Positions 13 to 63,853 of a stretch of DNA of 64,000 nt are shown in pieces. The notes beneath the pieces were generated by a model. That model saw nothing but the letters and a program-made list of their open reading frames with translations, was not told the DNA's origin and searched no databases. The number at the start of each line of letters is the position of its first letter. Position 1 is the stretch's first letter. Made by a program: the position numbers and the translations under genes. This DNA is from Bugula neritina (taxonomy: Eukaryota > Animalia > Bryozoa): positions 6,066,722 to 6,130,721 of the forward strand of contig OZ037766.1 of the NCBI GenBank assembly GCA_964035545.1. The letters run 5' to 3'.

Positions 13-1979
13 TTTTTCTATGGAGACAGCAACAGAAACAGGAACTGATAAAGGAATTGATGATGGAAACACATCTTGGTATCGTACAACGTGGCAGGTA
101 GTATATCATGACTGAAACTAAGTAATAGATGCAAGGTAATAAATAGTTAAGAGTTTTATAGATTTGTTTCAATGAAGTTTTACTGACAGCAACAACTTAG
201 GCTGTGCAGTATATTATATGGTACACTCACCAATACAAAACAATGCAAAATTCCCTGCTAAAGATATAAAAAATGGTATCTTGTATGGGTGATCTGTAGA
301 CTCCCCTTCTGCCTGGTAACTTATCTTTTCCTTAGACATATGTTTGTCATCAGAATTTTGTGCCGGCGTGGTCTTCTGAGATTTGGATGAATTTGGTGGA
401 CTCGTGGTTATAAGAGTGTCTTCACATGCTTCCAAAAAGTCTACAATTAGTTTATCTTATTAATATTGAAGATAACAATTTAGCATTATTGATTAAAGTA
501 GCACAAGAGTCATTTTGAATGGATGCTTTTATAACATTGTTACAATACTTTGTTGGAGAACAGTAGAAATGCTAAGAGCACCTCTAGATACTAGGCCTCA
601 GTTAATTTTTTATCTTCTAATATAGTGGAAAAGAGGTAGCAGAAGTACATGCTATAGAAGCTGTAAGCATTTGCCATTTTTGTCACGACGTTAATTGCAC
701 TGGCTCATATCTCATTATCTGCTGAGTGTGCTTTATATTTGGATGTAGTTTGTATAGTTACTGCGAGTAAGCCAGCCATTGAAACATTGAATGAAAGTTT
801 ACTGTATTTTTTCTGGTGTAGCAAATGTTGTCTTTGTGCACTTTCCATAAACTAAAGATGACAGACCAAAAATAAAGCTACAATTAAAACCTCTGCATCT
901 ATCTCACAGGGATCAAATCAAATGCCATTAATTTTGTTCCAGTGAAACTCTTATAGAACATAATTTGTAGACCTGTAATAGTTTCTTGCAACTGATCCTA
1001 ATTGTAAAATATTCAGTATACTGAGCTACTAGGTATAGTACTCTGTAGTAATGACTAGTTGAACAGGTTATATGGTGAACAAGTCTGGTGTACTCACTTC
1101 CACAGTACCCTCGGCACTGGCCTGATTTCACATTTTTCTTGCACAAAATGTAGCATGACTTTTTGCTCTTTGCCTCCCCATACAAACAACAGTTGGTTTC
1201 GAAGTCCCCAGATGTAGAATTGATTGACTTGCATTCCAGACTCGTGTATCTACATGGAACAGGTTCTGCTTTTATCTGTAGCATCAATGAAGCTGTCAAC
1301 ACCAGTGGCAGCATCAGCTCTATCAGAGTTTTCTACAAATTTAATGCTTTTAAAATTATATGAGCCTCTTAAGTAAACGGTTAAAGTTAAAATATTTATT
1401 TACACTTTTAATTGCCCTTCAGAGCAGTTTTACATATTCAGCGTTCCCAATTCATTTTAAGCTACTTATAGTAGATGAATAAGATTGGGACTATAACCCA
1501 CACTGGAAAATGACTAAGCGTTCTTTGAGAAAACTATAGAGCCTCTTAAATTCTACTTGAATTGGGTCATCTTACATTACCCAGCCTTGATAATTATTAT
1601 TATTATTATTATAGAGTTAAAAAATTGGATATGCCACTAGCTCCATAAGCTAACATTGATTTATCTGATTGAAGCATCATATAGTATGGTCAACTAATTC
1701 AGTTGGGTTTCTAATAAAATATACAGTGGAACTTTAAGCTGCAACCCATCAGACATGTGATCTAAGATGGAGAATATTGACTGAATAAAGAACTCAATCT
1801 ACTAAGTCAAATTTGTTTGATCAGTTTGACAGGGATTATTATTCAACAGATTATTTCACAAGATCTAGCTTTAGTTTAAAATAGCATAATATTATATTTA
1901 TACTGCTTCGGACCTCTTCCTACATTACTTATGCGTATAAATAGTTTAAACTTACCCTGGATACCATGGCGGTCTGCAT
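13..1979 (-). CDS. Cys-rich type I membrane receptor-like gene, paralog 1 (3' end runs off the left window edge)
   Basis: Exons (minus): 1979/1967-1956 (MQTAMVSR|GTAAG), 1332-1098 (signal peptide + CRD ...KSCYILCKKNVKSGQCRGYCG), 440-231 (NFLEAC, S/T stalk, TM start IPFFISLAGNFALFCI), 117-13 (VSVMIYYL...SCFCCCLHRK|GTAAG). All junctions are GT-AG and in frame. Confidence 0.75.
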
Positions 1980-4900
1980 GCGGCTTGTCAGCTAAGAGGT
2001 TAACGATGCAATGAGTATGGCGCTCTATCTAATAATTATTCCATGAGCGCAGGGAAATTTTAATGCGCAATAAAAGACAAATGCCCGGTTAATCTTACTA
2101 TAATATGCGCATGTTAATTCGGCACTTTATTGGACGCGCAAATAAACGTGATAATCCATTGAATGCAAAATGAGTTACAAGCACGAAAATAATATTGTTT
2201 TAAAATTTTGGTGTAAGCTAAGGCTGAGCTTATACTGAGGCAGTTCTAAGTTTAACTTCCGAATGCATTTCAAGTTTCAAATTGGACAGCAGCCTTTTTT
2301 CTAGCTAATGTTGTAATTATAGGAATTCGTAATATTATAGGTCTATAACAAAAAAATCAAATATAGATTGTTCTACTTTTATAATACATACTATGGAATA
2401 TCTTAAAGTCGGTTAGTGGTAAAGATAGCAGCTATGTTCAATCATAATAAGTGCAGATATGGCCATACAGAGTGTTTTAGTGGGACAATTGGGCCATATT
2501 TTGGAATGTTTTTCTTCCAATTTGTCATCTTTATACAATACTAAAACTAGCTTCATTTTAAAGAAACACAACGCATAAATGACAAAATTGCAGGTATTGT
2601 AGCGGACAGCCAAATCTAACCAATTTATTCAACGTTGCATTCTCTCGACAACGCTCAATACTTGCTATTAAGGAAAACGTTTGAAAGACTAACGCGCCAA
2701 ACTTCAAGCCGATTTCTAATGGTTTTTACATTTTGGATTACTTGTTCCATAGACTAAATGTGATAAAATAACCCAAATATAACCCCTCTCCCCTCCTGTG
2801 CTAAGTGAGGCGTTCAACAAATATAGAATAACATAGAGTAAGTTCCAAAAGCAGAAGTACACCAGCCATACACATTGTACATCCTTAGAGCTATATAACG
2901 CAGGGTGAAGGGCTGTTAAAGTTTACCAGTAGTGTACTATGCAAAATGTCTAGTTCTATAATAATCACAATTATATAATCAGTAGAAAACTGGCTGAATC
3001 AGCTGGCAATATAGGACCATTTTACTGCAACCATTACAAAGTCTAAGGCTTATAAGGTTATATTAGGTATTACTAGCTTTCAGCGTTACTAAAAACTAGC
3101 CAAATAACTAGCTGTGCTTTTTAGTAACTGGGTTATATAAGAGGCTTTATTTTGTAACAACGCTATATTATAGACTAAAACAATGAAGACAAAGACGCAG
3201 GTGTGCGCCTATAATTTGCTTTTATACTTTTCTTTTAAGCTTTTCTTCTATATAAAGTAGTGCAATAGCTTACAAATAACATATTTGCATTTATGGCATT
3301 CATATATCATGAAAAAATGTTGCAAATATGACAAGACGTGCATCAGCAAAAAACTAGACTCTATACTCTATAGAGTTTAGAGCATATACCATCTTGGACC
3401 GCCTGTGGTAGTTATAACTTTTGGGTGGCCCTCCCTCTCCCATAAATTTTTTGTAGAAATGCTAATCTTCTCTGGCAATATTTGTTAATGTGTTAATTTA
3501 GATGCAATATTATAGGTTGCAGACCAAAGTATTATTCCAATTAATTCTTATACGTCAAAATTTGACTGTGTAGTTCATGTGATGTAGCAAGTAGGCATTT
3601 GCTGTCAATGAATTAAACTGAGACATGCACTGGGCTATCTTTAAACCTCCTAACAGCTTCATTGACTCTCCTCTCTTTTATGATTAAGTGACAACTTACT
3701 GATTTTATTATCATTACTAAAAAAGTAGACAGGTCTACAATTCAGTCAATAAAGACTAATGAGTACGGAAAATGCTTTGTCAGTTGTCTTTGCTTATTTA
3801 TTGTTATATTTCCATGCACCTATATGGGCTATGACTATGCGGTTGTACGTCAGATTTTACATTCATGTTATTGTTGAATTTTACACAAATATAATTACTT
3901 GAGTCTTGAAAATGCTGGGGGGGAAGCATCCAGTAATATCGTAAAATTATAAATCTAGCATAGTATGTTAACTACATGTTGCTTAATCTCAATCTTAGCT
4001 ATAGCTATATTTCTTATATAAGAACGAAGTATGGAGATAAATATTTTACCAAGTGTAGTGAGTCTTTAAATTTAGTCTTTTTTCAAAACTTTGCATGGGC
4101 ATACATTGGGGACAAAAATGTCTGGCCTGTTTAGCATGTTTTAAGTTGAATTGAAAAGTTTATAGCTACAAGTTGAAATTAAAGCGGTATATGAGAAAGT
4201 TAGTGATTGCTTTCATGTAATATATTATTGTAATGGCTGTGGGAAGTGTATACCCCCCAACCTCCCATGTATTAAGTACCTGCAATGGAAGTCGTGATAG
4301 TATAGGATATTATAAAGTTCCAAAAGACGATAACTCTGTTAGCGCTGCTGCAATCCCATGTGGCACCACACCACTCATTGGGGGGGGGACACTGGCAGAA
4401 CCCCCCACCGGCCAATCAGAGCCAACCCTTCAGATATAAACCGCACCTTCCGGCGCCCATCTTTAGTCAGAGGATAACTGTCAGATAGACTAGGATAATA
4501 TTGTGTAACTGTTCTATAAGTACATTCTTTTGTAATTACTGATACTTTATTTGTATACAATTAGACATAAATATATCTCTTTGATGAGCACTATCTACTT
4601 CGGTCTCTCTCGAACCTGGTCTCTCTCGAACCTCGTAGGGGATATGCAGCAGTAATTCTTGTATACAATAATACCCCACACTAGTAGTGCACAAAACTAC
4701 AACAATATTTATGCAGTCCACCTTTATTAGTTAACTATCAGCTTTTATCTAAGTTGTAGATTGTCATTGCTTAATGCCCAATAACAGAAACTTGCCAATT
4801 AAAATTTACATTGTTACTTAGAAAAAAGTTAAAATCACTCAAAACAAAAAATTTTATTTTATTTTATTTTCAGATTCAGTAAATTATATATCTTCATCAG

Positions 4901-5788
4901 AAAAATTCATGGAATGTAAACTGAAATGAAGTAGCTCAGTTGTCGATATAATACTGCAAAATATTAGCTAATATGGCGACTTTAGACAAGTGTAAACATT
5001 GTTTTCTCACTTAGTTTTCTATGAGAAAGTTGGAGAGTTGAGCTCAGTTCGAGAACATTCTTTATCAGAAGCTTTAAGTTAGGTTACTCAGTGAATACGC
5101 AAATAATCTGTTAAAGATGCACGATATGCTATAGCACGCTGATAGTGTGATATAGCCAGTAACCTAAGTAACACGGAGCTAATAATAGGCTAACTCAGTG
5201 GTGATGGCTCAACATAGCAAGCGGTAGCTTCCGTTTTCTGTAATACACTTATAGAATCTAATTTCATCACCTTGTCCCAGTTTTTAACTGTTATGAATAA
5301 GCTGCACTATGTATTTAACAAATTTGTTTAACTTGATAGCAATGAGGTCTCTATTTTAGTTCTTAAATGCTTCGCGTAAATTATTGCAATAGAATGCTAG
5401 CTGGTTTGTTCAGAGTTTGATAGTGGACAGGCTTATCTTTAATTCCTTTTATAAAAAGTGTGTAAGGAGTTTGAATTGAAAAATATTTAACAAGTGTGTT
5501 TGAAATGAAGTCCTTTGAGTTTTAAATAGCATTTAATTTTATTATCAAATTTATTAGTTGAGACTAGCATTTTGAATAGACACCATGATGTGTATAATGG
5601 AGCAAAAAATTATAAGAAAAGCAAGTAATACCAAAATTAAATAGCATTGCATACTATCATGGACCAACATTTCTTTAAAACAAGATGCAGTTATTTGGTT
5701 ACAATATTCTTTAGCACAAAATATGAAGAGGTTGATGTAAATGACTAGGAGATTTGAGATTACGCTTTGAACCAGGTGTTCGTTTGTT

Positions 5789-7861
5789 TCAAGCTGTGAT
5801 TATATTTCTCTGAGTATTATCCTCTGGCTGAGAAATAAGGTGGTCCATTTCCAATTCTTGTTGAGATTCACCCTCTACACCAAATAGAAAATAGTACAGT
5901 TATACAATAACCCAGAGCTGTATAACATGACATGTATCATGTATGCATGCATTGCGCAATAATGTATCTGCCGCATGGACTTTGCACAAATTACATGATA
6001 GCTCATTTTATAATGGATTTAGTCATTCACCTTTTTAAGTTTAAATCAGCAGTTTGTTAGTTGTGAACATTTGGAATATTCCTGAATGCTGAATGGTGTA
6101 AAATATGTTTTGTGCTTCAATTTTACTATCTCATCTCCGAGTGAGTGAGTGAGTGAGTGAGTGAGTGAGTGAGTGAGTGAGTGGGTGGGTGGGTGGGTGA
6201 GTGAGTGAGTGAGTGAGTGAGTGAGTGAGTGAGTGAGTGAGTGAGTGAGTGAGTGAGTGAGTGAGTGAGTGAGTGAATAAAATATCTTTTTTCAAATAAA
6301 TTATTTTAATAGATGGATACCAGCTGCCAAATTTTAATGAGCTAGCCTCATATACTGATATACTAGTTACGAAGGCTTCTGTTAAACACATTGATTGCAC
6401 AGTGACTGTGAGCCAGGCTACAACTTTTCTAGGCTAGTAGGTAACTAATCTAATCACTTACTGCTGAGATCTTCATCTGCTACAGCTCTTGGTTCAGTTA
6501 AATTCTCATCTCCATTACCTGACTCATCTGTAATATAAAACAAATTGTGAGTCTCAACAATGATGCACCGATTTTCTATTTGCCCTGCAGTTGCTCATCA
6601 GGCCTTTTACAAAAGTTGCTGGCAATACAAGATATAATTATAGGCTATCCATAGAAAAATGGGAAGTGTTTTTAGAAAAATATGACTAGAAAAATATACT
6701 CATATTATATGTCTTTGTTACAAACATTAATTAGTACGACCTTACAGTATTCAGTGATGCCCTGTTTGTCTCTTTTCAATTCACAGGGTAGCTCTGGGTA
6801 GTATCCATTTAATTTTAACTGCTAGGCTATCACTAGCATTACATTGACTAGTGTTTTTTTCCAGGGTTTTGTAGTCATTTGGAAAGCTGTTATCAGCGGA
6901 TAATAGATGTTATTTCATTATGTTTTAACAATCTAAAGATTAACTTACCATCTTGGTTGAGTTGACTAGGGCTTCCACTACAAAACTCTACAATAATTCA
7001 ACAAGAAATAATTAAATTACATTCGAATACAGCAGAGTACTTGGGATATATATCCTCACCTATCTCCGCTCTGTCTTGTTCGGGTAACGGGACTTGTGAT
7101 ATATATCTTAGGCTCTTAGCTAGAATAAATTTTATCAAATTTTCTCAGCAACAGTATTAGCTTAAGTTACTATTACGCATAACTTACTTTGTTTTAGTTC
7201 ATTTCTGTTAAACCAGCAGATCACTCCAATAAGTGCAATTGCAAGTAGGATACACACTGGAATCAGTGCAGCAGTACAGATGGGAATGTCTATTGGGTGA
7301 AAGCCAGTTCTATCGCGACCAGAAATATAGCTCTTCGTACTTCTGTTATCCAGGTGTGACTTAGAGTTAACAGTTTTATGATAATCTGCATTGTTTGCAA
7401 CATTTAACGGTGTAACAGTTGAAGAGTTTCTACTTTCGGCTTCTAGAGCTTCATAATATTCTACAACAACGGAAAGGAACATTTTTAGACTACTTGATAA
7501 TCAGTTTCAGCAATGTTGCTGTGGAGCAAAATTTATAAGGAAAAGCTGCTCAATATTACTACGTAGACTTCTACTCACTAGAACAATAATCTTTGCAAAC
7601 ATTATTATTAGGTTTTTGAGTCCCACATTTCACGAAACAGGAAAAGGCTGTGTCATCCATTTTCACGCCACATGCTTTGTCAAAGTCAGAGTGAGTCCGT
7701 AGTTTTGTATTTTGGCATAGTTTATTTGTCCACAGCTTCCAGTCTTCTGGTGGACTAGAAACTTCATCTGGGTCTTCTATTATGTCAAAAGGATAGCTGT
7801 AGAGGACCAAAGGAAGCTGTGTCCAACATAATAGGACTAGATAGTATGAACTTTTCCTCAT
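5789..7861 (-). CDS. Cys-rich type I membrane receptor-like gene, paralog 2
   Basis: Exons: 7861-7579 (signal peptide MRKSSYYLVLLCW..., CRD), 7460-7188 (KYYEAL, stalk, TM ICTAALIPVCILLAIALIGVICWF), 7119-7060, ~6977-6949, 6818-6746, 6527-6462, 5874-5789 (KGESQQELEMDHLISQ...IITA*). The first two exons are solid; the small tail exons are less certain. Probable 5'UTR exon ends at a GTAAG donor near 8458. Confidence 0.75.
6138..6276. repeat. (GAGT)n tetranucleotide microsatellite with a GGGT interruption (intron of paralog 2)
   Basis: Directly visible; explains the spurious THSL-repeat ORF 6131-6400. Confidence 0.97.
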
Positions 7862-9209
7862 GTTCTTCGTAATCTATACATAAAATTATTAGTTGTTTCG
7901 ATCACAATGTATAGTTGCTATAATGAGTTTAGGTAAAATCTCTCTTAATAACAAATAATAACAATAGCAAGTGCTGGCAGCAGCAAATATATTAATAGTA
8001 ATTCTGTAGAAACCTTAAGAAGTCTCCAAAAGAAAGATTTTTAAGTATATATTAATCTAGTGTATATAGATATAGGCGGCTTAGGCCATATACCTGCTGG
8101 TAAATATTACTATAACTATAAGTATAAGGCATCCACAGTCGAAGCAAAGCCTCGAATGCGAGTTGAATTTTCAGAATGTGAATTTAATCTTATAGTACAC
8201 TGATATAATTGAAACCTAATGAGCAAGTAATAATTTTCCTAAAGATAGAAATGCTTTCTACAAGCTCATCTGCTGAACTGAGCCAGCATCGGGTACAACA
8301 TTTTAAAACTAATAAATTCAGTAAAACACTTTTAAAAACACGCATCTCAAATAAACTTAAAAACGTATGTATTGTCTCATTAAAACACAAAATGTAGCCG
8401 AAAGAGTTTAAACTGTCATTCTTTTCAAAGCAGTGTTTTACAAAGTCGTTACTCTTACCGGTGTTGAGCCGATTCCACAAATATCAAAACCTCAACGAAC
8501 ACTCGCGCAACGCAGCTGGGGACTTATAAAACTTGATTAGTGTTAGCGTAGATATTATATACTATACTGCGATACCCGAAAGTTCTGGATTACCCATTAG
8601 CCAATCACAATGGGTTACGCACTGACGCATGACCGATCATAGTTTCAAAGCACTGCGCATTGAATATGCCCATCAGTTTGCCCATTATAAAAATTTGAGT
8701 TTCTGCTGATAAAAAGCTGCATAGCTACCCGTTTAGGCTAATTTAAATGACAAACTACTTTTAATTAAAGTAGAATACTGAATATAGGCCCACAAGTCAT
8801 TCCCTGACTAGCAAGTAAATCTATTTATTTATTAGATGACTCCGATTTTGCATGTCTGTTTTCATTTCACCTGCACTTTTTAATTCATTTAATTTTTTCG
8901 ATCATCCAAATATAATAGTTTCTTCAATGTATGTTATAGCAAATGGCATTATATAATACATATTGTAAGCCTCAGTCCGAATGTCTTAACGCTTTGGATT
9001 GAGCAACAGCTTATGAAGATAGCTTCAATTCAAATTTTGAGCCTTTCTGGTTCTTTTGTAAGAGAGGTAATTCTTATTTGTTTCTATAGATCATTCTGAG
9101 TCTGAAATCAACATATTCCATATAGCCAGTAAATGTTAAATTTTAGTGAAGGTAAACCAGATTGAAGCATTTTTTCTTATACCTCAAGCTCTCTATAACA
9201 AAAAATGCT

Positions 9210-9876
9210 CTAGACCAGAAAAGGGTGACCAAATTATGCTACATGGCCAAACGTGGCTCACTTGAAATAATCAGTGAAGCTCACTAGATTTCTTCTGCAG
9301 AAGCTATGTGATTGCTAACTTGTATATCTGGAAATTTGGCAAAACACAACATTATGTTCTGACCAAACCTACAGTGACACATATATACAGGTATAGACTT
9401 ACAAATTCATGCAATTGTGTCACATCATCTTGTCTTGCGTGGGTCACATGGTAATGTACACGTACATGTAATTACATCAGTATTTTGTAAGCTAGTAGCT
9501 TCCGGCGGCTATTCTATTGTTCTGTAAATAGATGTATCCATAATAGCTACTATTGTAATCTTATTATCTTATTGTGATTAATATGCCACTATACATTTGC
9601 TTTTATCAAAAACTAACATTCAGAGACTCTACAATGCTAAGCACATGTGGAGGAGCTCGGTCAAATCTTCTGCTATGTTCTCAAACAAGAGAAGGGAAAG
9701 CTGAAAGTTAGAGAATGACAATTATATATGACAGAGACTGCAATGTTACAAAACTTCACTTCACTGAAGACAAGATCTCCGATCATATGTCAAAATTATA
9801 GTTCAATGTATCTGGCTACTTGAATTCTAAAATTTCACCATGCAAGTAGCAAAAAGGTTTGGTCATCCCCACTCTA
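9210..9876. mobile_element. Degenerate TIR-bounded DNA transposon relic (possibly hAT/Charlie-like)
   Basis: Left GGGTGACCAAATTATGCTAC-ATGG matches the reverse complement of the right end CCATGCAAGTAGCAAAAAGGTTTGGTCATCCCC. No TSD resolved. Confidence 0.35.
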
Positions 9877-11951
9877 GGCCACAAAACCTTTCAAAACTTA
9901 CGTTTTTGTATTGTTAATTCAGACCTTTATGTAATCTTATTTTAATTAACAGAGAAGGTACTACATAAATAATTTTGCAAAATATTATCCTTGTAAATCT
10001 TAACATGATTTACATAGAATGGCTGCTCATAAGCTTAGGCCTACCTACACAACAATTATGCAATGTTTACTTCAGCTGCTGATTCATTTGTCATTGAATA
10101 GTGATTAACAGTTTTGAGTTCAGCAACTGGTACTAAATTTGGAGTAAACATCAAAACAATTACGATCAAAAAACCCCTTATTTTCTTTTTATTGCCTAGT
10201 AAAATTCCATGTATTTCTGTGCAAAATTTTTATTATAAACGATTCAACAATTTGCATAAACAAAGTGCAACTAAAAATTAGAATGTTTGTTTGTTAAACA
10301 ATAATCATAACAGTCCAGTCAGTTGAGTATTTGGTTATGCTATTATCTTTCAGCTTTAGTAATCTGCACAAGTAATTCAAATTCACCTGAAATATCCTGC
10401 TTAAATTACATTTGTATACATTTATGTCAGCACAAAACAGTCACAAGTTTATAAAACTAGTCTTCCATAAGTCAAAAGTTTAAATATTATCAGAAACTTG
10501 AAAATAGTTGCAACTTAACAATTCCATGGGTTTTGAATTGTATTTTGAATAAAGTCATTTATTTACAGATATATTGAGAAAAAATAAATCTTTAGATACA
10601 ATTAAGCGATACTTTGCCTATGAGAAAACACAGATTTAAAACAATAAAATAATATCATCTTGCAGTGTAAAATGCTATGGCAAGGATTCAGGATGCAGGT
10701 GCAGAAATAGAGATATTAAAAATCATATATATGAAAATTTACAAAAATTTGCATATAAGTAGTTTTCTAAAAAATCTTCCTCACCAAACTTAACCACAAT
10801 GCAGATTAAGCTTTTCACGTGACAACTAATGAATTTCAATCTTTCTCTTCATAAACGTTGATTAACATTTTGTATTCACTTGAATGGGTGGGTTGTTGTT
10901 GTGTGCCTCAGATTTCATTATCTCAGTACAATGTTCTTCACATTTACCAGATGTATAGCAGCTAATGCTCAAGACCAAACAGTCTGATGAAATCTAGTTA
11001 GACATTTCATAAGATTGGTGATAAGTAGGCTTTTCAATCAAAGAACATCTTATTCAATGGTTATTTGATATGCCCTATTCCTAACCATTGTTGATGAAAA
11101 CAAGGTAGAGTTTGTTAACTATAGATAAGTGATAATAAAGCTTGGTTCAATATATTATAATACAAAGTACCAAAAAGCATGTGTGCCCAAATGACTAGAG
11201 CTGGTAGTTAGATAAGGAATATGCCTATGTTGCCATGGGCTAATTAGTCAACTCTGCTAGGCTGTTGGTGATGTTGAAATGAGATGCTGGTCACATTAAC
11301 CAAATTATAATTTGTAAGCCAGTTGTCAAGATAACAGTCTGTCTAAAGCCCTAAACCCTTTCCCACCAGAGTGATTGTGATTAAACAGACATGAGTCTTG
11401 CATAATAACTAAATATGTTGACTCAATGACTGAGAATTCTGCAATGTCATTAGTGATAACACTCTCTCTTTTTACCATAAAATAGAGTTATGCAACAAGA
11501 TGTGTTGAAGCAATAGTGACATCTGAGTCATGTGTTTAGTACAAAGTTCAATTACAATGATTGGTTTTAGAAAGAAGTACCTAAAATCTAAATGTTTAAC
11601 CCAGAGTTGCATGTTTACCTGGTTGATTGGTTTTGATAAAATACAGTAAATAGATTAGTTATAAACTATGCTGTTACATCGACCCCCTCTCCCTCCCCAG
11701 TATTGTAGTGTTTATGCTTGTTTTTATTGACCTGTTTCAAGCATGTTCACAGTTAGCTTGATTGTACGCATCAGTTTTACTAGGTAAGGCTAAGACCTGA
11801 CATTAATAACAAAACACTACAATGAAGTTTGTAATTCTATTACGTTGGAATTTATTTTGGTTTATTTTTTATTTTACAATGTCAATATAAATTCTGTTAG
11901 ATTGGAAAATTTGAGCTTGCTGAGATTCCACTCGAAACCGAAGTGTTTGGT

Positions 11952-14734
11952 TTAAACTTTCTCTGCATTCTTCTGCATAGTAATCACTGTAGTTTGGGGA
12001 ATAAAGCTGGTAATCTCTTCTTCTTTATAGTCTTTCTCATCTACATCGTAAAAGCACAGTCACTGCATGACAAGGTTAACAACATTTAGGTGCAGTAGTG
12101 AAAAAAATTTAATAGGAATGCAAAGCCATCTTTTATTTTTAATAAGAACTTTTTGATAAAAACATAAAGTTTTGCTAAATTTATAACCTAGAACATGGCT
12201 TTTCTCCATTTTTGTATCTAATTGCTTCCTGAACACCATTATTATCAGTTTTATTCCAATCTATTAATAAAAACAATATTTTTGTGAACAGACTGAGAAT
12301 GAAATTAATAATAATGGTGGTCCTAAAGGAGATAGGTGCAGTAATGGAGAAATGCAGTGTTTGCTCAAATGTGCCACTAAGTCATAAGACCAAAGGTTTG
12401 CTAGTGAGAATTGTAAACAACCCATGCCTTCCAAATTCCAAACACCTATTTATACAATATAATAAATTACAAAGTTGTTTAATAACCATGATACTAATAT
12501 ATAGATTATTATACTAGATCAATAACAACTTCAGAACCCAGGTGTGTAGCTTGAGCAACTCAGTTAGTCAATTAAAATGATGATGCAATGCTATTATGTA
12601 ACATATACCATATACCTTACTACTTTTCCATCAGCCCTCCCCCCAAACCCCATATTATTAGTGAGTGTAGCTGCCTACTTACCATTGTGTCTTGTAACCG
12701 GAACACCCGTTAATTCATAGTTGCTCTCTTCATCATGCTTGTTTACTGCATCTTGTGCTACAAAAGAACATTCTTTGCAGCATTAAAATAATGAACGTGA
12801 CTTATCTAAATAGTCAAAGTATCTAGGTAAATATTTGTTTGCACAAATTAAAAAATCAACTGATAAACAAGCACCTTACAGTACAAGTTAGTAGTTAGAA
12901 TGACAGAATATCTAATGGCCGCAACAACAATTTTGTTATAGATATGAAAAACTGCATATTACATATTTTTTGCACAGTGTTCCCTCACTGAGCTATATAC
13001 CGCCATAGCCCCAAAACTTCAATTTGGGACATGGCAAATTACCAAATTTAACTCCCACGCAGATCCATCGAATCCAGCGATTTTATCCTTATACATAAGC
13101 CACAACACTGGGAGCCTATGGAGTTAGGGGTCTTATGGAATTCTGTGAGAAAGGGGACTGTGAGATACAGAGGGAACACTGTACTAAATACAAGTTAAGC
13201 AAGAAAGCCATAATTGTTATGAACTACATACTTAGTTATATAATACAGTATGCTGCCTGTGTGTGTGCATTATAGCAGGTAGTTGGATACACTTACGCAA
13301 CTCATGGGGTGTCGTTTCCATTGAAGCCTGTCTGTCTATGACTTGTAGTTGGAGTGGATCATCTCTAGAAGTTTGTTGAGACTTCTCACAGCCTAGATCT
13401 AATATTTCCATTTATCAATCAATACATATTGTTGCACTCATAATTTTTGAAATATAAAAGCTACACCTTCATGTATTTGTTTTAAAATCATGGGTGGGTG
13501 TAAAACAATTTCATTCATAAAGAAGGATAGTAGTATAAGCATAGTTAATCGTATAAGCATTATAGTTAATAGTATAAGCATAGTTAATAATATAAGTATA
13601 TAGTTAATAGTATAAGCATGGTTAATAGTATAAATTACCCACTGCATATATAACACACCTCCCTTATAGTAGACTAGAATAAAGTAATGAAATCAACAAG
13701 CTAATAGTTTGTGGCACAATATTTGCCATTCAAATGATTATGTAAAATTACATAAAAAGTATCAAAAGCAAAATTAATTACTAAGTGCACTTATAGTGCA
13801 GATATTTAATGTGACAAGTCTTGTTCAACATCCTTACTTCAGATAGTTTTGTTATAGCATATTATTCATTTTATTATTAGATCCAGAAATTTGACTTACC
13901 TGGCTTTAATTGGCTCTGTTTTTTACAAAATAACCCTAAAACATAAATATAGAAATTTAGCAACACGATGTAGTGTTATACAGCAACAATTATAAATGAA
14001 ATGTCTGTGTATATTTACAGATCAGGATGAAGCTAAATCTAACTGAACAAATGGCAAGACCAAGAATCCAATGTCAGAGGACAAGTTATTTGCAGCACTC
14101 ACTCTGTTTCAATGTTGAGCACTTGAATCCAAGAACAACTAGTATAACGAGAACAACTATTACAACGAGGGAGATTACTCCATATGATTTGAGTAAGATA
14201 GTCATCAAATCCGTAGTCTGATTGAAGCCCTCGCCTACTCTGTGATTGCCCACCGTACTGTTTGGTATTACTAGTTTCTTTTGCTGGCCAACTTTTTCAG
14301 ACTTGAGTGCTTCCCAGTATTCTATAAAGAGACATCACTCTTGAAGAGAATTAACCAAGAAATAACAGACTATGGTCAAGGTGTTGACTACAGTAATACA
14401 AATTTCATCAAGTTCTATACAAAGTCGATATTTCCTACTAACTTTTGCACTCATCAAGGCAGAGGTTGGATTTTGGAAACTTTCTACATTGCTGTGGACA
14501 AGAAAAAGGAGTCTGCTCGTCTATATATCCACAACTACGAGAAAAGTCTGTGTGATTTTGTAAATCTCTACAATGAGAATGTTTCCATAGTTTCCAGTTT
14601 GCTGGCACCTCTGCTTTGTCCTCGTCAGCTTCAGGTAAAATGGGGAACGGACTCTCAGGCACCTCTGCTGAAGACATTGTCGCACATTCCAACATCAAAG
14701 GAACCACCAGGCAGAATTTTCCAATCTGTACCAT
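11952..14734 (-). CDS. Cys-rich type I membrane receptor-like gene, paralog 3
   Basis: Exons: 14734-14443 (signal peptide + CRD ...FSCPQQCRKFPKSNLCLDECK), 14321-14103 (KYWEAL, stalk, TM YGVISLVVIVVLVILVVLGF), 13935-13900, 13392-13297, 12757-12683, 12040-11952 (DEKDYKEEEITSFIPQ...AEKV*). All introns are phase 1 and GT-AG. A possible extra or alternative exon near 12260-12188 is unresolved. Confidence 0.8.
12975..13181. mobile_element. Tc1/mariner-type MITE (~207 bp), intron of paralog 3
   Basis: TIRs CAGTGTTCCCTC ... GAGGGAACACTG, right flank TA. Related to the element at 31356. Confidence 0.55.
13530..13635. repeat. ~18-21-bp degenerate tandem repeat (AGTATAAGCATAGTTAAT)
   Basis: Five to six visible copies. 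Confidence 0.8.
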
Positions 14735-15653
14735 CCTTTATAAGTATCACATCAAAAAATTTATTTTATTATACATCCTAACTGAAACATTTTACAGCAA
14801 ATAGGACACACAATTTAACAGAGTTTCAAGTTTTTCATATATTATATAGCTATATTTCCTTTTAACTATAGCATGGTAAAATTTAGCTATAATAAACAGC
14901 ATCATGACCAACATATAGTTTCTCTAGTATCAGCATCAACAGACTGATAGCTATCTGATCTTAAGCAGCAATAATCCATCAGTTATAAATATAGCTTCTA
15001 TTTGAGAGTTTCATTGAAAATGCCTCAGTTGATTATGAATAAATAACTTAGAACTTTGTTAGGTTATCACAAAACTTCACCAATGAGAAAAATACCCTGT
15101 TGGCTGTTACCTTTGCTATCTAACTTAAAGTTAATCAACAATCTTATTTTATTATTACTACATTTTCGCTGATTTCATAGCTGTTCATTCTCATAGATGG
15201 ACTTTAATGAGCTACCGAATATTAGTGCCAAATCTTAGAAGTAATTGACTAATTCAATTAAAATTTGGAGTCTAATTGATTAGATTAAAGAAACCATCAT
15301 ACTCTCTACTCCTTACCTTTTTTTTCAGTGCCTCTGATAATAGCTTTGTTGAAAATTCAGATGTTAAAAGAGAATATCACTCAACTTTGAATTAAAACCT
15401 GTAACTTTCTATTTCAATTAGTAGCCACGTGAATATTTATAGAGCAGTGGCACCGTTCACCTTTTGTGAATAAATGAAGTGCTTCACTTATATTGATAGC
15501 TACTTTATCAAATGTCCCAATCTATGCATGATTTCATTGGCTATTCGGAAGAGGGGTGTGTCTGAAATTTGATGATATGCAAACAGAGGCAGGCTTTCTT
15601 CTTCACAAGCCATCATTCTATTATGCAATAATTGTTCTGATATATGCAGCAAC

Positions 15654-16221
15654 TGAGGGGGGGGGGTGACTCTTGCTTGAAAGGGGTGGATTTGCAGAAA
15701 TTCAGCAATATTCAAGGGAGCATCACAAAATTTTAAATATTCAATTATTTGAACAACTTTAGTTTTAATAGTTGATATATTATTTTCTGAGATTGTTGTA
15801 CACCCATGAAATTTGCTTTAGCAAAATTTTTTGATTTACAGTTGACAGATGAATGGAGCCTATGGTATAACGCATTGCTATTTTTATTCTCCAAATCGAA
15901 ACTTTTTGTTTTAGCATTTATAATGTCAATTTTGTATACAATTTTTAGTGTTTTAATAGTTCTCTAATTTTTCTGCCTTTTTCTACAATCCTGAAAATTG
16001 CAAACAAAAATTGGAATTACCTCATCTATTCAAAAATGCATTTTGTATAATGTCTTCGTTTTTTATCAAGTCCTTCTAGTATAAAATTAAAACTTAATCT
16101 GTTTTATTAGCTGATAGGTAATTTTATTAGCTGGTGGGTCATTTTCAAGTAATGATCAGAGCAGATACGCACGAACCCGAAACCCCTGCAAATCCACCCC
16201 TTTCAAGTAAAGCCCCCCTCA
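15654..16221. mobile_element. Non-autonomous TIR element (~570 bp) upstream of paralog 3
   Basis: Left TGAGGGGG...CTTGAAAGGGGTGGATTTGCAG is the inverted copy of right CTGCAAATCCACCCCTTTCAAG...CCCCCCTCA. AT-rich interior, no ORF, TSD not resolved. Confidence 0.6.
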
Positions 16222-17466
16222 CAGGTAAAAGGTTACTTGCATATTGGGATTTAATAGAATGTAGGCTGCTTGATGATATATAGCGCCGAAGGTTAATGTT
16301 ATTGTGTTCCATCTGCCCATATCTCATATAGGCACCCTCACTAGAATGTCAAAGTAGTCCAAAACGCAGGCCTACAACCATATATGGCTGAGACGCGTAG
16401 GTTTAACTTGAATTAAAGATGAATCAACGATAAAAATTCACTATAAATATTTTTTCCTGGGGAGAGGAGATGTACCTTAGCTCTTTAAATTCAGGTAATT
16501 GGTTTCTAAGCATTTGCAGTGTCAATATTTGCCCTTCAAGTATTGCCGCCACTATTTAGATGTGTGGCTTCTAACTAAGTTAATTGTATTCACCAAATTC
16601 TGCTTTAATTGTTTAAACTCTCTATATCTTTGCACAAGCCTCTAATGTCTCTCAAAGTGGTCTGCTTAAACTACAGGAGCAGTGATCACTATTTGTCTTG
16701 CCAGGATTCAAACCCCATGACCTAGCAAATCTTATACTACACTCACTCTAACAGTGGTTGCTTTTCTGTATTCATCTAGATTCTAGTAACCATACCAGAT
16801 TAAACATTGCTTTTTTATGGATCGAACCGGGATTGATTAATTCCTTTATATTGCTTCGAATAGTACAGTAGTACAATCTTAAAATATTTGCCAGTTTAAC
16901 AAGTCTATAGTTAGAGGAAAGCTATCAACCATATGTGACAAAAAGTTAAAAATAACTCAGAATAAATGCTAGCAACACTTAGTCTAACTCGAGTATAGTT
17001 TTGTTTTATAAATAACTATTATATTTGTCAAAAGTTGGCTGTATTTAAAATATTGTTAAACGGAAGAACAATTCATTTGGAGAGCATACTGAAGGAATGC
17101 AAAAATAATATAACTTACTGTAATATATAAAAACATGAGCTTTTTTCAGTTTGTTTACTATATTATACCTGCTACATTATAATATTATGAAAAAATGTAA
17201 AGTGTTAAATATTTTAGTAGAAAACAGCTCTAAGGCATTGTTCATATATCAGGATAAAAGTTAAAACTACTGGTGGTGGTTCAAAATTGAAAAATGTAAA
17301 AAACATGAAAAATAGTTACCAACTAATGATAGCTGTCAGAAACAGCTGACTAGCTCATGATACTCATACCTTAGATACAATCTGAGGTAATTCTTGGAAC
17401 AAAGCATTACATGTTATAATATAATCATAATCTCCAGTATAGTGTAGCTCTTCTGTGGGCACAAAC

Positions 17467-20400
17467 TTAATAATATTTTCTTTTGTTATAGGGAAGATTT
17501 TCGGAGAAGGATCTTTGCCTACGGCACTGCAAATGAAATACACTTCAAAAATATAATATTTATCAACAATACGCCCCCCCCCACCGAGATTGACAGGAGA
17601 TAACTCCTCGTTTTCCAGGCACTGACTCAATTGTCATAAAAATTCTATAGGCTGTTTTGGTCCTTTATTTTTAACACAGATGCCTGGATAGAACATACCT
17701 ATAAATCTATGTCTATATATTATACTTACAGAGCACAGACCAAAGTACCATGGCTAAAACTAATGTTTCAACCAAAGCATAATATTTAAAGAGTGAGTGA
17801 ACTCAAGCATTATTTGCTCATTTTTAGCATTAGAGACAAACAACCATGCAGCCATTATTTGTTCAATGCTTCAGCAACTTTATAAGGAATATAATTAGTT
17901 TGTTTAATTCATAGGTTTTTAATGAACTAATTATGTACTATAGTTGATTACCTCTTTAGCTTTCTTTCTAGCCTCTTCAGCAGTTCGTGGAAGTAGTAGG
18001 GTGTTGTCAAAAGCAATCTCTGAAAAAACGTCATGCTTCTCATCATTGGGCTCATCATCAGTGTCTAAAATTTATAATAATGTATAATGCATTGTAGTAC
18101 AATACCCTACGTAGAATATAATACTTGCAAATTGTAATATAGTATCAAAATATTACAGAACAAAAGATGAATTTTTTCAAAACAATGTTTATGATCATAT
18201 ATTTACAAAATATCCAATTGTTCAACATTAGCATTTTTTACTATTGCTCATATGAGCATAATTACAATATAATTGTAATATGTTGATAACTATTTTAAGC
18301 TTTGACTTTTTTATAATAAAAAGTTTATGACAGCATTAAAAAAGTTTTCATGTGTAGCGCTCAGCTAAATCAATTACAGGGCCTCTAATTTTGAAATAAT
18401 TGCTTTCTGTTATATATAGCACAATTTTGTTTAAGTTCAAAATATCTTTTACAATATACCTATGTATGTATATGCAAACTAAAGTTTTTTATATGGAACT
18501 TGTGTTAAATGAAAAAGATTGCAAAAAAATTATGTTTTTGAGAGATCATACTAAACTCACACTCTAAACAAAATATTAAATAAAACATAATCAACAAGAA
18601 TATAAGTTATTAGAAGTCATCCGCAGCTGTAGCTATATATAAATAAATTTCTAATAATGGCTATATAGCTTCTACTCACCAGTGGCATATGCACTCAGGT
18701 GCTCCGACAAGGACTCCCTCACACTTTTTCCTTCTAATTCTGAGAATTTATGTCTATAAGCAACACCCCCAGTGGCCAGTATCTCACATTCTTTTACTAA
18801 AATATTGTTTATGACAATCAAATATGCAATTAATAATTACTAATTAAATTATTACAAAATAGGATTATGGTCATGCACAGTAGTGCTTTACTATAAGTGT
18901 AGAAAGACAACTTCACTGCAAATATAACCCACCGTCAACAAAATCTAATATAGCGCGATACAATATGCAACCAATAATAGCTAAATTCTAAATCTCCTAA
19001 AAGCCAACAAGCATAATTATTGAGAATAATGGTGAATTTTGTTTTGCCCAGCATAATTAAAACAGGGACCAATATATTGTGCAAGTTTTCCACTAGCAAC
19101 AAATAACATCCTGTTTCGGCCACTTGCATGTTTGCAGGCAGCCTGTTGACATGACCCGCTATTATGTAAAAATTACGATCAGACTGGTATTGGTTACTTT
19201 CAGCACTAATATTTGCTTGATATACAGTATACTAAATCGCTGCGTTTCCATGACTGCTGCCCATTATTCTAATAAAAGCCCCCCCCCCCCAAGGATTAAT
19301 TGTGGTTTGTGGTTTGCATTAATTTATAGTTGTGGTTTTATTCCACGTAACTATAATATTTTCATTAGCCTAATGAAAATATTATACATTTACATAATGG
19401 AACGTAAAGATATACCGTGCTCATTACTAGATTTCAAAAATATAAAACAGGAGGTACTTGACTCACAGCCAGCCTCACCACTAGTTGCTCTAGGGTGAAC
19501 CCTATAACTGGGGAATAGTAAAATACTCATGCCCACCCTTGGCGATGAGGGGGTAACACCATATTCTCCTGTACTGTACAGAGAACCCTTGTGTAGAGTG
19601 ATGATATTGTAGCCCTTATATACTCGCTGCTTAATATAAGCATACCTTACATACAGTATGATCAAAGAGTACTTATATCCTTTAGATACACTTAGCCATG
19701 TTTAAAGAGTATAACATACTTTACTTACTCTCACCATCCGTAATTCGTTTTGCTGACAGGCCAGTTTCATTGATGCGTCTTATGGCTTGCTGCCTCGAAG
19801 GCTTTCCAGGCTCAGCTGGAAGATACATTGTAAAACTCTATAATTATATTTCAATTAGTACATTTAAATCATTTTAAAGGTTTATAGAACTAATTTAATT
19901 TAACTAATTTAACATTGTAATTTAAAATTATTAATATGAAAATTCAACTTAGCTCACAACCCTTCATATTGCTAAACACAGTTTCAAGTCTTGACTTCAT
20001 TGTCGAACAAAAAATAAAAAATGCATGTGTGGCATGTCACCGTGGTAATAATTATAGAGGCTTCCTCCATAGGATAAATCGCCCGCTGGCTAAAATTTAA
20101 ACTCCAGTGATGTAAAGCTGTTTTAATTTTGTTGTTTGAAAATAAACCCTATTGATGATAATCTAGCCTCACTTTCAAAGCAAGCGTGCAGCATACTTTC
20201 TAATGAGTGATTCATACCATTACGAGTTTCTTATTTATGGACCATGCTAATTTTAGCAGTTGACTTAATATTAATTTTTACTAGTTTTTTCCTACAATAT
20301 ATTATAGTTATAAGTCACACAACTTTTAAACCTGTCAACATTATTATTTATAAACCATCTTACATTTCTCAGCATCAGTCTCAGGCTTAGCTGAAGGTGC

Positions 20401-21709
20401 TGAGCATTCATCTTCTTGTTTTATGGTGGCTTTATGGGCCTGCCCATTTAGAGATAGAGAGTCACAGCTGGGAACCAAGGCATACTCATAGCCATGCTGT
20501 TTAACTGTAATACAACACAGCAAGTCATGACTACTAGGTGAATGATTACTAACTAAGAAAACACGGTGTTACTGCGACTATTGTTATAACAAACAAACAG
20601 TATAATTCAGATAAATATTTCCTTTGCTAGATAAGCGGTGTGGTGATAATGGTGCTATCCATATACCTTGGTTATTGAATCTATGAGACTGTCTCAGTCT
20701 AATAGCTGATACCACAGCAATAAAGCAGACAACTATGAGCAATACTGCCAATAGCGATGCCACCACTATCAGCAACATCTTGATTTCATTCTGTTTAATC
20801 GGATCCAAATACAGCCTGTGGGATGTTTCAGCTGGTAGGTCTGAGACCGTAGGGCTTCCGGTAGTAGCAGTGGTTGTAGCAGTAGCAGTAGTTGTAGGGG
20901 GCACTCGACATTTCTCCCTATATTCTGCACATTTTACCAAATAGTAATTTTATGACAACACATAGGGAAAGAGTACTATACAGTGAAACGAAAGACATTA
21001 TATTAATGATGTTTACAACATGCATACATACAAACATACATACACTACATACATACATACCTAGACATACTAAAGTATAGTATGATGCCAGAAATAAAAC
21101 ACTCTATAGAAGTGTACATAAATATGACTCAGATTGTCATAACAACTGCAAACTATTTTTTTAGTTCCTAAAATAATTCTGAAATTTACATAGCCAATTC
21201 AAAACTTCAAAGTTTTGAATACTTTGTTAAATTTTCTGGCTTTACTGGGCAATTTTTTCTATCAAAACTTCTGGATTTAAACAGATAGCACGACATGTGC
21301 TATCGTTTCAAGCAAAAAATCATTTTGAATCAGTAGTGGTGAGTTTGACTTACATTTAACCGACTGTGGTCTGCGAAATTGAGTATCTCAGCTATAGTTC
21401 CTTACCTACACAGTATTCATCGCTACACCAAGTAGATGGGAATTTGCTGCAACTTTCTTTACAGGACACATAGCCTAACGCCACTTCAGCACAATTGTAC
21501 TTGAAATTGGGATAATCTTGAAGTAGTTCATCATTACACTCCCAGTTTTCCCATTTGCATTCCACAGGATCCTCATAAACAGTCGTAGTAGATGGATTAA
21601 CAAGCCCAGGAACCTGCACTGCAACCTCCCGGGAGTCATTGTTGCTGAAGTAATTGCCTGCACATAGTGACAGGATGCACACACCGAAGCAGGGTTTGAC
21701 TCGAGTCAT
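17467..21709 (-). CDS. Cys-rich type I membrane receptor-like gene, paralog 4 (5'UTR separated from the CDS by the Gypsy insertion)
   Basis: Native ATG 21709-21707. Exons: 21709-21406 (signal peptide + CRD ...VSCKESCSKFPSTWCSDEYCV), 20924-20667 (EYREKC, Thr-rich stalk, TM MLLIVVASLLAVLLIVVCFIAVVSAI), 20504-20364, 19815-19735, unresolved micro-exon(s) ~19570-19467, 18753-18680, 18064-17952, 17526-17467 (CRRQRSFSENLPYNKRKYY*). The acceptor of the ATG-containing exon (29086-29087) and an upstream donor (29229-29230) lie beyond the retrotransposon. Confidence 0.75.
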
Positions 21710-21711
21710 AT

Positions 21712-22278
21712 TGTGATAGATTCTCATCCTCTACTGTTCTCAAGTAACTGCGTGTGTCAGTATTATAATTACTGTTGCGTATATTTTGAATGCTGTAATT
21801 GTAGCTAAGTTGCACTAGCTTTCTAATGCCTTGTTATTGTGATTAAGCTTTCAGTATAATGTAATTTTTATTAAATACGCATTTCCAGAGTTATTTTCCC
21901 TTTTTGCTATTTCATCGTTTTGCATTAATACTGATACTGGAAATTTGTGTAGCTTTTATGAATGCCTTCAATAGGTTGTTATTATAGCTAAATTCTTGGC
22001 CTATTGAATTATTCATTCTCCTTTGTCTATTTTTCTTTTGTTACTGTCAAGCTTAACTTTCTTTTGTCTGTTGGAACATTCTAGATGTGAATTCTTGTGT
22101 ATAAAAGCAGGCGAGTTTCCAGTGTAGCTTCAGACTACTACTGGAGCTCGCTGGTAGTAGGACCACATGAGCTGTATCTGATACAATAAAGGTTATCCTC
22201 ATTTGTACTCAAATACTTGGCTTATTCTTTCTAGAGCATGTAGGCACTAGTTGCATTCAGAACCCACAGTTTACTACA
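21712..22278 (+). repeat. 5' LTR (567 bp)
   Basis: TGTGATAG...TACTACA; TATAAAAG at 22100-22107; AATAAA at 22185-22190. No difference from the 3' LTR seen by eye. Confidence 0.97.
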
Positions 22279-23234: not shown

Positions 23235-23254
23235 CTTCCGCCAACCGTGGGCCT
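23210..23254 (+). promoter_or_regulatory. -1 programmed ribosomal frameshift signal
   Basis: Correctly phased slippery heptamer T TTA AAC (23210-23216), 5-nt spacer, 11-bp stem AGGCTCACGGT/ACCGTGGGCCT (23222-23232 with 23244-23254, one G-U pair). The pol frame is -1 relative to gag and open from this point. Confidence 0.85.

Positions 23255-59531: not shown

Positions 59532-63853
<4,322 letters not shown>

Follow-up and report, generated by a model that had tools for sequence, protein, structure and literature searches.

The Bryozoa, a phylum of colonial animals, have received little study. One of them, Bugula neritina, attracts attention as a fouling species and because its symbiont produces bryostatin. 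Here, we analysed a stretch of 64,000 nucleotides from this species (assembly GCA_964035545.1, contig OZ037766.1, positions 6,066,722 to 6,130,721 of the forward strand; G000:C2:6066722-6130721 in our numbering), which we refer to as the window. It consists of AT-rich animal DNA (~33% GC) with one GC-rich insert, and the assembly from which it is taken is chromosome-level with a size of 216.00 Mb (PMC11480708). The window contains four genes, g1 to g4, for small membrane proteins with one cysteine-rich domain, and a fifth gene of the same kind, g0, is located beyond its left edge. The subject of this analysis is the array formed by these genes and the possible kinship of its cysteine-rich domain with tumour necrosis factor receptors (TNFRs).

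Architecture of the gene array

The open reading frame (ORF) listing and a direct reading of the strand place g1 to g4 on the minus strand of the window in the same orientation. All five genes (g0 to g4) encode small type I membrane proteins, composed of a signal peptide, a cysteine-rich domain of ~55 amino acids, a stalk, one transmembrane helix and an acidic, disordered tail of 40-100 amino acids. The stalks are partly mucin-like; those of g1, g4 and P0004, a related protein from outside the array, are Ser/Thr-rich. In g1 to g4, the domain follows the motif C-x7-9-[DN]F-x3-C-x8-10-SC-x3-C-x7-9-C-x3-4-C-x2-[YF]. The exon-1 donor is located one codon plus 1 nt past the last core cysteine in phase 1 (g1 A/GTGAGT, g2 A/GTGAGT, g3 A/GTTAGT, g4 G/GTAAGG, with the slash marking the exon end), and the closing Tyr or Phe of the motif is the first full codon of exon 2. 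Exon 2 opens with x-[YF]-x-E-[AK], continues with the stalk and the transmembrane helix and ends in phase 1. Intron 2 is a phase-1 intron in all four genes, as are all further introns of g2 and g3, which were modelled under guidance of the GenBank orthologues. The number of cysteines in the domain differs: g1, g4 and P0004 have 8, g0, g2 and g3 have 6. One cysteine of the additional pair is found 6 residues ahead of core cysteine 1, the other in exon 2.

A preceding interpretation of the window, made from its letters and below called the sequence-only reading, had claimed the shared architecture in four co-oriented genes, the cysteine motif and the phase-1 intron one codon plus 1 nt after the last core cysteine. 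The architecture can be read directly and the intron position holds in all four genes. The motif also fits all four, but the [DN]F element is too narrow, as it is replaced by SF in some g4-like genes of a sibling lineage of the species.

Orthologues and transcript evidence

GenBank contains proteins of this sibling lineage, namely KAF6040403.1 (P0005), the orthologue of g3, and KAF6040405.1 (P0007), the orthologue of g2, both listed as 'hypothetical protein'. The exon 1/2 junctions read in the window agree exactly with theirs. The underlying gene models were made with AUGUSTUS and transcriptome hints (PMC7576161). In addition, contigs of four sequencing runs were placed on positions 1901-7900 of the window; one run is recorded as RNA, while the label of the other three, 'RNA?', is only a guess. 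Exon 1 of g2 is covered in three of these runs (all 'RNA?') and exon 2 in two, in one of them by a 214-nt metatranscriptome contig that corresponds to 7245-7457 with 0 differences. Introns 1-3 of g2 and the intergenic region 1901-4300 are uncovered, pieces at dispersed repeats aside. The other pieces belong to dispersed repeats or to a single contig within the modelled g2 intron 4 (6329-6454). Given this contig of an 'RNA?' run, a read-through isoform of g2 ending in ...DEDLSSK and a stop codon is conceivable. The contigs are short, and none among the four runs on 1901-7900 spans a splice junction, hence the support for splicing is indirect.

Could the genes be chance ORFs, pseudogenes or annotation artefacts? 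The junction-spanning contig that was not recovered speaks for this, as does the fact that the GenBank models count as ab initio only. Against it, five paralogues and an outgroup gene agree in cysteine pattern, in intron positions and phases and in the arrangement of signal peptide and transmembrane helix. Moreover, contigs of the one RNA and the three 'RNA?' runs lie on g2 exons and not on introns 1-3 or most of the intergenic DNA, and the orthologues are intact in another lineage. We consider it very improbable that the genes are not real.

Two repeats within g2 were recorded as side observations. Intron 2 contains a short dispersed repeat (window 7050-7092), which is present in many unrelated contigs of the 'RNA?' runs at a depth of up to 139, and intron 4 contains a (CTCA/CTCACTCA)-type microsatellite (window 6131-6400), which is readable as an ORF of THSL repeats.

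Family size and distribution

A profile of the four domains was searched against the whole genome and recovered g0 at G000:C2:6060729-6060881 (E 6.9e-12), ~6 kb beyond the left edge of the window. Donor position, exon-2 start and second donor of g0 are as in g1 to g4. Since g0 was not part of the training set, its recovery by the four-gene profile indicates that the shared pattern is not due to chance. With a profile of 12 sequences, exactly five members were found in the 216-Mb genome, all of them within ~28 kb. The cysteine-rich domains of the paralogues share 23-42% identity.

Beyond this genome, an exhaustive profile search yielded 4 matches among 1.84 billion representative proteins and a word-indexed search 7 matches among 5.8 billion proteins; a separate word-based search aimed at full-length homologues of P0007 had no match. 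All database matches are exon-1 ORFs from metagenomes or runs associated with B. neritina, entries of the B. neritina GenBank proteome, or P0004 and P0009. The source of the latter two is a metagenome of a marine biofilm, the sample of which is named in PMC6355793. On contig L009, P0004 agrees with the array genes in the position and phase of its intron; it also has a Thr-rich stalk, a transmembrane helix and a second phase-1 donor. Since this outgroup protein is of the 8-Cys type, 8 cysteines are probably the ancestral state, and g0, g2 and g3 probably lost one cysteine pair.

Judged by their sequences, the five genes are a tandem array of old paralogues from a bryozoan-restricted family. This is in line with the sequence-only reading, in which a highly diverged tandem array of an undescribed family, possibly continuing past the left edge, had been proposed together with a profile search of the genome as a check. 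The search returned g0, and the family is known in GenBank under the label 'hypothetical protein' only, has no Pfam match and comprises bryozoan-type sequences only among the 1.84 and 5.8 billion proteins. The term 'orphan' used at that time applies in so far as the family is restricted to bryozoans, but not in the sense that any structural kin is lacking. As a side observation, intron 1 of g0 (L008 3770-3990) consists mostly of tandem units of ~11 nt, GTGTAAGTATA / GTGTAAATATA, each of which resembles a splice donor.

Divergence between lineages

Contigs of the sibling lineage share 79-88% identity with the non-coding DNA of the window. Given this value, they represent a cryptic sister lineage rather than alleles. 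In g2, exons diverge by 11.5% and introns by 5.0% (Fisher p 3.6e-5), i.e. the exons evolve ~2.3 times faster than the introns, whereas no difference is seen in g3 (exons 12.5%, introns 11.7%). The dN/dS ratios, which are pairwise between lineages and as such suggestive only, are 0.57 for g2, 0.75 for g3 overall and 1.3 for exon 1 of g3. The rapid divergence postulated beforehand, for which a dN/dS analysis had been recommended, is thus reflected in exons that diverge at least as fast as introns. Among three haplotypes of g2, 14 of the 56 positions of the cysteine-rich domain are variable. Most of these positions are located in the loop between Cys1 and the DF element, in the hairpin, in helix 1 and in the inter-helix loop of the predicted fold, and the second helix is invariant. 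Each 'RNA?' run holds several variant exon-1 contigs; a high general heterozygosity is reported for B. neritina (PMC7576161).

Exon 4 of g3, which encodes part of the cytoplasmic tail (13297-13392, minus strand; CEKSQQTSRDDPLQLQVIDRQASMETTPHEL), is a separate observation. Here, 1 of 95 aligned nucleotides is changed and the peptide is identical, on a background of ~12% divergence at which zero change would have a P of ~7e-6. The exon may constitute a constrained signalling motif or an element maintained at the nucleotide level.

The lineages also differ in gene content. In the sibling lineage, an extra and apparently chimeric gene, P0003, is located between g3 and g2 (L011 3291-4700) and is absent from the window; the alignment of L011 with the window breaks at position 11128. 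Exon 1, the intron and the beginning of exon 2 of P0003 are g4-like; what follows is a g1-like exon 2 that contains an internal duplication and whose transmembrane helix is doubtful. It was considered as the orthologue of g4 and rejected, as it is positioned downstream of g3 in L011 and shares 72% identity with g4 compared to the 79-88% of orthologous DNA. The true g4-like orthologues of the sibling lineage are P0010 and P0011. The GenBank orthologue of g1 (EB796_001280, P0012) is annotated with 67 amino acids and corresponds, after ...GEAKAK, to the g1 frame shifted by one base, which points to a frameshift allele or to an assembly error in the 2020 draft.

Fast evolution may also be a sign of relaxed constraint. 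In that case, the products would be small glycoproteins of the cell surface with a mucin-like character, or else proteins that are shed or act as decoys, none of them with a signalling function, and the cysteine-rich cap would be a structural or protective module. Such proteins would be compatible with the Ser/Thr-rich stalks of g1, g4 and P0004, with short, acidic and poorly conserved tails, with g3 exons that overall diverge like introns (dN/dS 0.75), with the truncation of the GenBank g1 orthologue by a frameshift and with a Pfam similarity that is weak and confined to stalk and transmembrane regions of the TMEM154/TMEM119 type. However, relaxation alone does not yield g2 exons that are faster than introns. 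Reading frames, cysteines and splice sites are intact in five genes and the outgroup despite 23-42% identity, and the 1 of 95 changed nucleotides in g3 exon 4 argues for a constrained function in the cytoplasm. We regard relaxed constraint on such surface proteins as an unlikely explanation.

Predicted fold of the cysteine-rich domain

Two domains were folded with AlphaFold2: the ectodomain of P0007 (87 amino acids; predicted local distance difference test score, pLDDT, 77) and the trimmed segment P0005:46-110 (65 amino acids; pLDDT 87.5, predicted template modelling score 0.70). Both are of the 6-Cys type and stem from database proteins of the sibling lineage. The two models begin with short helices at the N-terminus; a beta-hairpin between Cys2 and Cys3 comes next, and then a helix-loop-helix with the Cx3C...Cx3C pattern; in the P0005 model, the strands comprise residues 26-29 and 33-36 and the helices residues 37-43, 48-53 and 55-64. 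Single-domain TNFRs, to which Grindelwald, Fn14, BCMA, TACI and BAFF-R belong, are characterised by one small N-terminal cysteine-rich domain, a short stalk, a single transmembrane helix and a short tail, all of which are evident from the sequences and the GenBank models of the array. The hairpin followed by a helix-loop-helix with Cx3C...Cx3C, which is likewise characteristic of this class, is present in the AlphaFold2 prediction only.

When the 65-amino-acid model was compared with 48,161 chains of the Protein Data Bank (PDB) by VIA-align, the Grindelwald ectodomain (6zsy_A) was at rank 1 (Z 2.5, root mean square deviation (rmsd) 3.3 Å, 41 of 48 residues, 17% identity). Residues 14-58 of the model are aligned with residues 37-81 of the Grindelwald chain, and the ends of this range place C50/C54 of the model on C73/C77 of Grindelwald. 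Allowing for the shorter loop, C37/C41 of the model would fall on C57/C61. A shape search in the ESM Atlas ranked a cluster of Fn14/TNFRSF12A, recorded almost only from chordates, first (template modelling score 0.41, 43 amino acids). In Foldseek searches of the PDB, Fn14 was found at rank 7 with the 65-amino-acid model (38 columns, rmsd 3.1 Å, 24% identity) and BCMA at rank 15 with the 87-amino-acid model. Language-model features of the g2-type domain pointed to TACI-CRD2, BCMA and again BCMA as the top three clusters (0.79-0.75). The case for kinship is thus based on the agreement of four methods on one small class of receptors and not on any single score.

A considerable number of results weighs against this kinship. 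None of the structural scores attains the threshold usually applied: the Z of 2.5 for Grindelwald is tied with unrelated TPR-like rows (Z 2.0-2.4), and the TNFR rows of Foldseek have E-values of 6-7, with no row under E 3 for either model. VIA-align gave no Z >=2 for the 87-amino-acid model, neither in the wide search nor in a second look, and in the second look with the 65-amino-acid model Fn14 fell short of Z 2, as did everything else. The language-model scores are below 0.8, a level also attained in one third of cases with shuffled proteins, and the g4 exon-1 domain had no usable match by this method. AlphaFold may only echo a cysteine pattern learned before, given the shallow alignment of 12 rows. 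The spacing C-x3-C-x7-9-C-x3(4)-C is found in every member, but the nested disulfide pairing is an expectation. In A1 and X2 modules, the hairpin is found within the first Cys pair, but the one predicted here is placed between Cys2 and Cys3, and the hairpin sequences of the array contain no DxL motif.

Sequence-level searches point in the same direction. Hmmscan with the exon translations and P0005/P0007 produced no match (E <=10) to the models of TNFR_c6 (PF00020, the 6-Cys module of the A1-B2 type), BCMA, TACI or Fn14 (PF12191), and only weak look-alikes of stalk and transmembrane regions in Pfam (TMEM154, TMEM119-type, ECSCR). Six-frame genome searches with PF00020, PF09257 and PF09305 led to other loci, with canonical TNFR_c6 genes on contigs C5 and C7, and not to the cluster. 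The family profile retrieved only chance fragments of IL-6R (E >1) from the PDB sequences. In the tails, neither a death domain nor any other Pfam domain was detected in the exon translations or the full GenBank orthologues. SQQE in the g2 tail, which is retained in P0007, fits (P/S/A/T)x(Q/E)E, and no consistent TRAF-like motif was recognised by eye across the other tails. The missing Pfam link is not decisive, since Pfam TNFR_c6 is reported to miss genuine grnd homologues (preprint 10.1101/2024.07.27.603686).

The likeness to TACI, BCMA and Grindelwald asserted in the sequence-only reading is therefore mirrored in the predicted fold and in the best structural and feature matches, but every score is sub-significant and a TNFR match in Pfam is lacking; the same holds for the AlphaFold and Foldseek check suggested there, which brought up Fn14 and BCMA at E-values far from significance. 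Taking both sides together, the cysteine-rich domain is most likely a very divergent domain of the TNFR type from the single-domain class of Grindelwald, Fn14, BCMA and TACI. On the predicted fold, we put the prospects of a TNFR-type kinship slightly above an even chance.

Comparison with known single-domain receptors

Grindelwald (Grnd; 6ZSY/6ZT0) is composed of a hairpin and a nested C2 helix-loop-helix (C57-x3-C61-x11-C73-x3-C77) with a Phe packed between the modules, is contacted by Eiger at the hairpin tip and the inter-helix loop, and superposes poorly even on the true TNFRs Fn14, BCMA and TACI (PMC8024323). The array proteins resemble it as type I proteins with a single N-terminal cysteine-rich domain (~50 amino acids in Grindelwald), a short stalk, a transmembrane helix and a short tail. 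Further shared traits are a hairpin ahead of two antiparallel helices held together by Cx3C...Cx3C (predicted for the array), a conserved Phe near the module junction, 8 cysteines (in the g1, g4 and P0004 type), the lack of a DxL motif and the failure of Pfam TNFR_c6 to detect either. On the other hand, identity amounts to 17% only, there is no link by profile, and the inter-helix loop comprises 11 residues in Grindelwald and 7-9 in the array. The N-terminal halves differ as well: Grindelwald has an X2 hairpin with two interlocked disulfides, whereas in the array the prediction is a helical N-terminus that has a single disulfide, the hairpin coming only past Cys2, and the extra cysteine pair would link the N-terminus to the last helix. 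Traf2- and Veli-binding motifs like those of Grindelwald were not recognised in the array, which is known here from its sequence and predicted fold.

Fn14/TNFRSF12A is the smallest TNFR and would be similar in having one cysteine-rich domain with 3 disulfides, an A1-like part and a nested C2 helix-loop-helix. It differs in that PF12191 does not match the array and that the VIA-align Z is <2. Its spacing is C-x2-C...C-x2-C and not C-x3-C...C-x3-C as in the array. With BCMA and TACI CRD2, the array would share the hairpin and helix-loop-helix, according to the prediction. Both differ from it by the ligand-binding DxL motif, which was not found in the array hairpins, by a gap of 2 residues between Cys2 and Cys3 (8-10 in the array) and by the lack of PF09257 and PF09305 matches at the array. 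The second-half spacing of BCMA, C-x3-C-x8-C-x3-C, is as in the array. The last four cysteines of BCMA are paired 1-3/2-4, while a nested pattern is expected in the array.

Expansions of single-domain receptors have a precedent. Lineage-specific expansions of grnd homologues are described from other invertebrates, e.g. 12 paralogues in Capitella teleta, in a survey that does not mention Bryozoa (preprint 10.1101/2024.07.27.603686). As in the array, these are multiple single-domain TNFR-like paralogues in a lophotrochozoan that can be detected only with purpose-built profiles. The array differs by its tight 28-kb tandem arrangement and by evolution at or above the intron rate.

Is the resemblance a matter of descent, or did a bryozoan-specific cysteine-rich domain converge on the shape of the TNFR C2 module? 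In the latter case, the proteins would serve adhesion or the recognition of targets other than TNF, such as colony self and non-self, larval settlement cues, microbes or the Endobugula symbiont. A motif as simple as the helical hairpin with twin Cx3C has evolved repeatedly. Neither sequence nor profile searches link the array to any TNFR family, and its profile finds no relatives at other loci even though canonical TNFR genes exist elsewhere in the genome. Its structural matches score low, on a par with unrelated folds, and the N-terminal half of the model is unlike known TNFR modules (PMC8024323). Exons that diverge at least as much as introns, several haplotypes and a variable gene content are also what would be expected of a recognition locus. 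Convergence, on the other hand, would turn it into an odd coincidence that four methods rank single-domain TNFRs first or near first, and the overall architecture is that of Grindelwald, BCMA and Fn14. We judge convergence to be a serious but rather unlikely alternative.

A model for the array proteins

We propose that the array encodes divergent, bryozoan-restricted and fast-evolving single-domain TNFR-like receptors with a novel N-terminal half, a proposal in which we place as much belief as doubt. In such a receptor, the N-terminal part would be closed by one disulfide and carry the invariant Phe of the [DNS]F element. It would be followed by the beta-hairpin and by a helix-loop-helix stapled by Cx3C...Cx3C, similar to the nested C2 module of Grindelwald and Fn14. 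In g1, g4 and the outgroup gene, a link between the N-terminus and the last helix would be made by the fourth cysteine pair. Hairpin and inter-helix loop are the putative ligand-binding face, the ligand being a trimeric TNF-family protein or something else, and ligand-driven clustering might elicit a signal through short motifs of the tail.

What, then, could such receptors recognise? Evolution at or above the neutral rate, along with a gene content that varies between lineages, suggests a changing ligand or a role in recognition. A six-frame genome search for TNF ligands with PF00229 revealed nothing at E 0.01 and, with the limit raised to E 10, two weak exon fragments (E 0.06-0.09); this result is uninformative, since introns split the domain and the control genomes cannot contain the family. 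One of the two fragments, with 20 bits (L016, G000:C1:29388682-29388792, minus strand) carries a strand of the TNF-ligand type, CGIYYIYVQISY, and is probably one exon of a TNF-family gene.

The array could even be a polymorphic recognition locus, in which TNFR-like receptors under balancing or diversifying selection take part in the fusion and rejection of colonies or in the discrimination of symbionts and microbes. This idea derives from exons that diverge beyond introns, several haplotypes per run, variable sites on the predicted binding face and the gain, loss and chimerism of genes. We give it a slim chance. Should it prove correct, Bryozoa would have their first molecular candidate for allorecognition, and a new use of the TNFR fold would have come to light.

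If the kinship with TNFRs holds, the range of minimal receptors of the Grindelwald and Fn14 type reaches Bryozoa. The family would then illustrate how much drift is possible in a tiny domain, which by prediction has a new module at its N-terminus and, in some members, a fourth disulfide. As a fast-evolving array, it is a candidate for the study of receptor-ligand co-evolution or of self/non-self or symbiont recognition in a colonial animal, and its short genes with ectodomains of ~55 amino acids make binding, structural and population-genetic studies cheap.

Gene coordinates and neighbourhood

The coordinates of the modelled exons and of the neighbouring genes are compiled in Table 1. The start codon of g4 is probably at 21709, a position conserved with its relatives.

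Table 1 Exons of the array genes g1 to g4 and neighbouring gene fragments, in window positions unless stated otherwise; the slash marks the exon end at donor sites.
Feature	Position	Strand	Content
g1 exon 1	1098-1314	-	Signal peptide and cysteine-rich domain of the 8-Cys type; phase-1 donor GGA A/GTGAGT
g1 exon 2	231-440	-	F-L-E-A-C (eighth Cys), Ser/Thr/Pro-rich stalk, first part of transmembrane helix; phase-1 donor
g1 last exon	L008 9391-9530		Acidic tail; outside the window, ~470-610 nt left of its start
g2 exon 1	7579-7861	-	Signal peptide and 6-Cys domain; phase-1 donor; matches KAF6040405.1
g2 exon 2	7188-7460	-	K-Y-Y-E-A-L helix end, stalk, transmembrane helix; phase-1 donor
g2 exons 3-5	6987-6949, 6527-6462, 5874-5789	-	Acidic cytoplasmic tail; SQQE; phase-1 introns
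g3 exon 1	14443-14734	-	Signal peptide and 6-Cys domain; phase-1 donor A/GTTAGT
g3 exon 2	14103-14321	-	K-Y-W-E-A-L helix end, stalk, transmembrane helix; phase-1 donor
g3 exons 3-6	13935-13900, 13392-13297, 12757-12683, 12040-11952	-	Cytoplasmic tail; phase-1 introns
g4 exon 1	21406-21727	-	Signal peptide and domain of the 8-Cys type; phase-1 donor G/GTAAGG
g4 exon 2	20667-20924	-	E-Y-R-E-K-C (eighth Cys), Thr/Ala-rich mucin-like stalk, transmembrane helix; phase-1 donor
g4 last exon	20344-20552	-	Tail; acceptor 20552 or ~20504 (uncertain); stop codon 20346-20344
Nuclear-hormone-receptor ligand-binding-domain exon	40712-42854	+	PF00104, E 3e-4; preceded by a long Ser-rich ORF
DHHC palmitoyltransferase exon	55648-56046	-	E 2e-16
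CoA-transferase (OXCT-like) exon	61354-61632	+	E 8e-10

An Rfam search of the window returned nothing. A retroelement of the Ty3/gypsy type with 56-61% GC occupies positions 22329-28312 on the plus strand and starts ~600 bp upstream of g4. It contains an open gag-like ORF of 301 amino acids and an open pol ORF of 1643 amino acids, the latter with protease, reverse transcriptase, RNase H and integrase.

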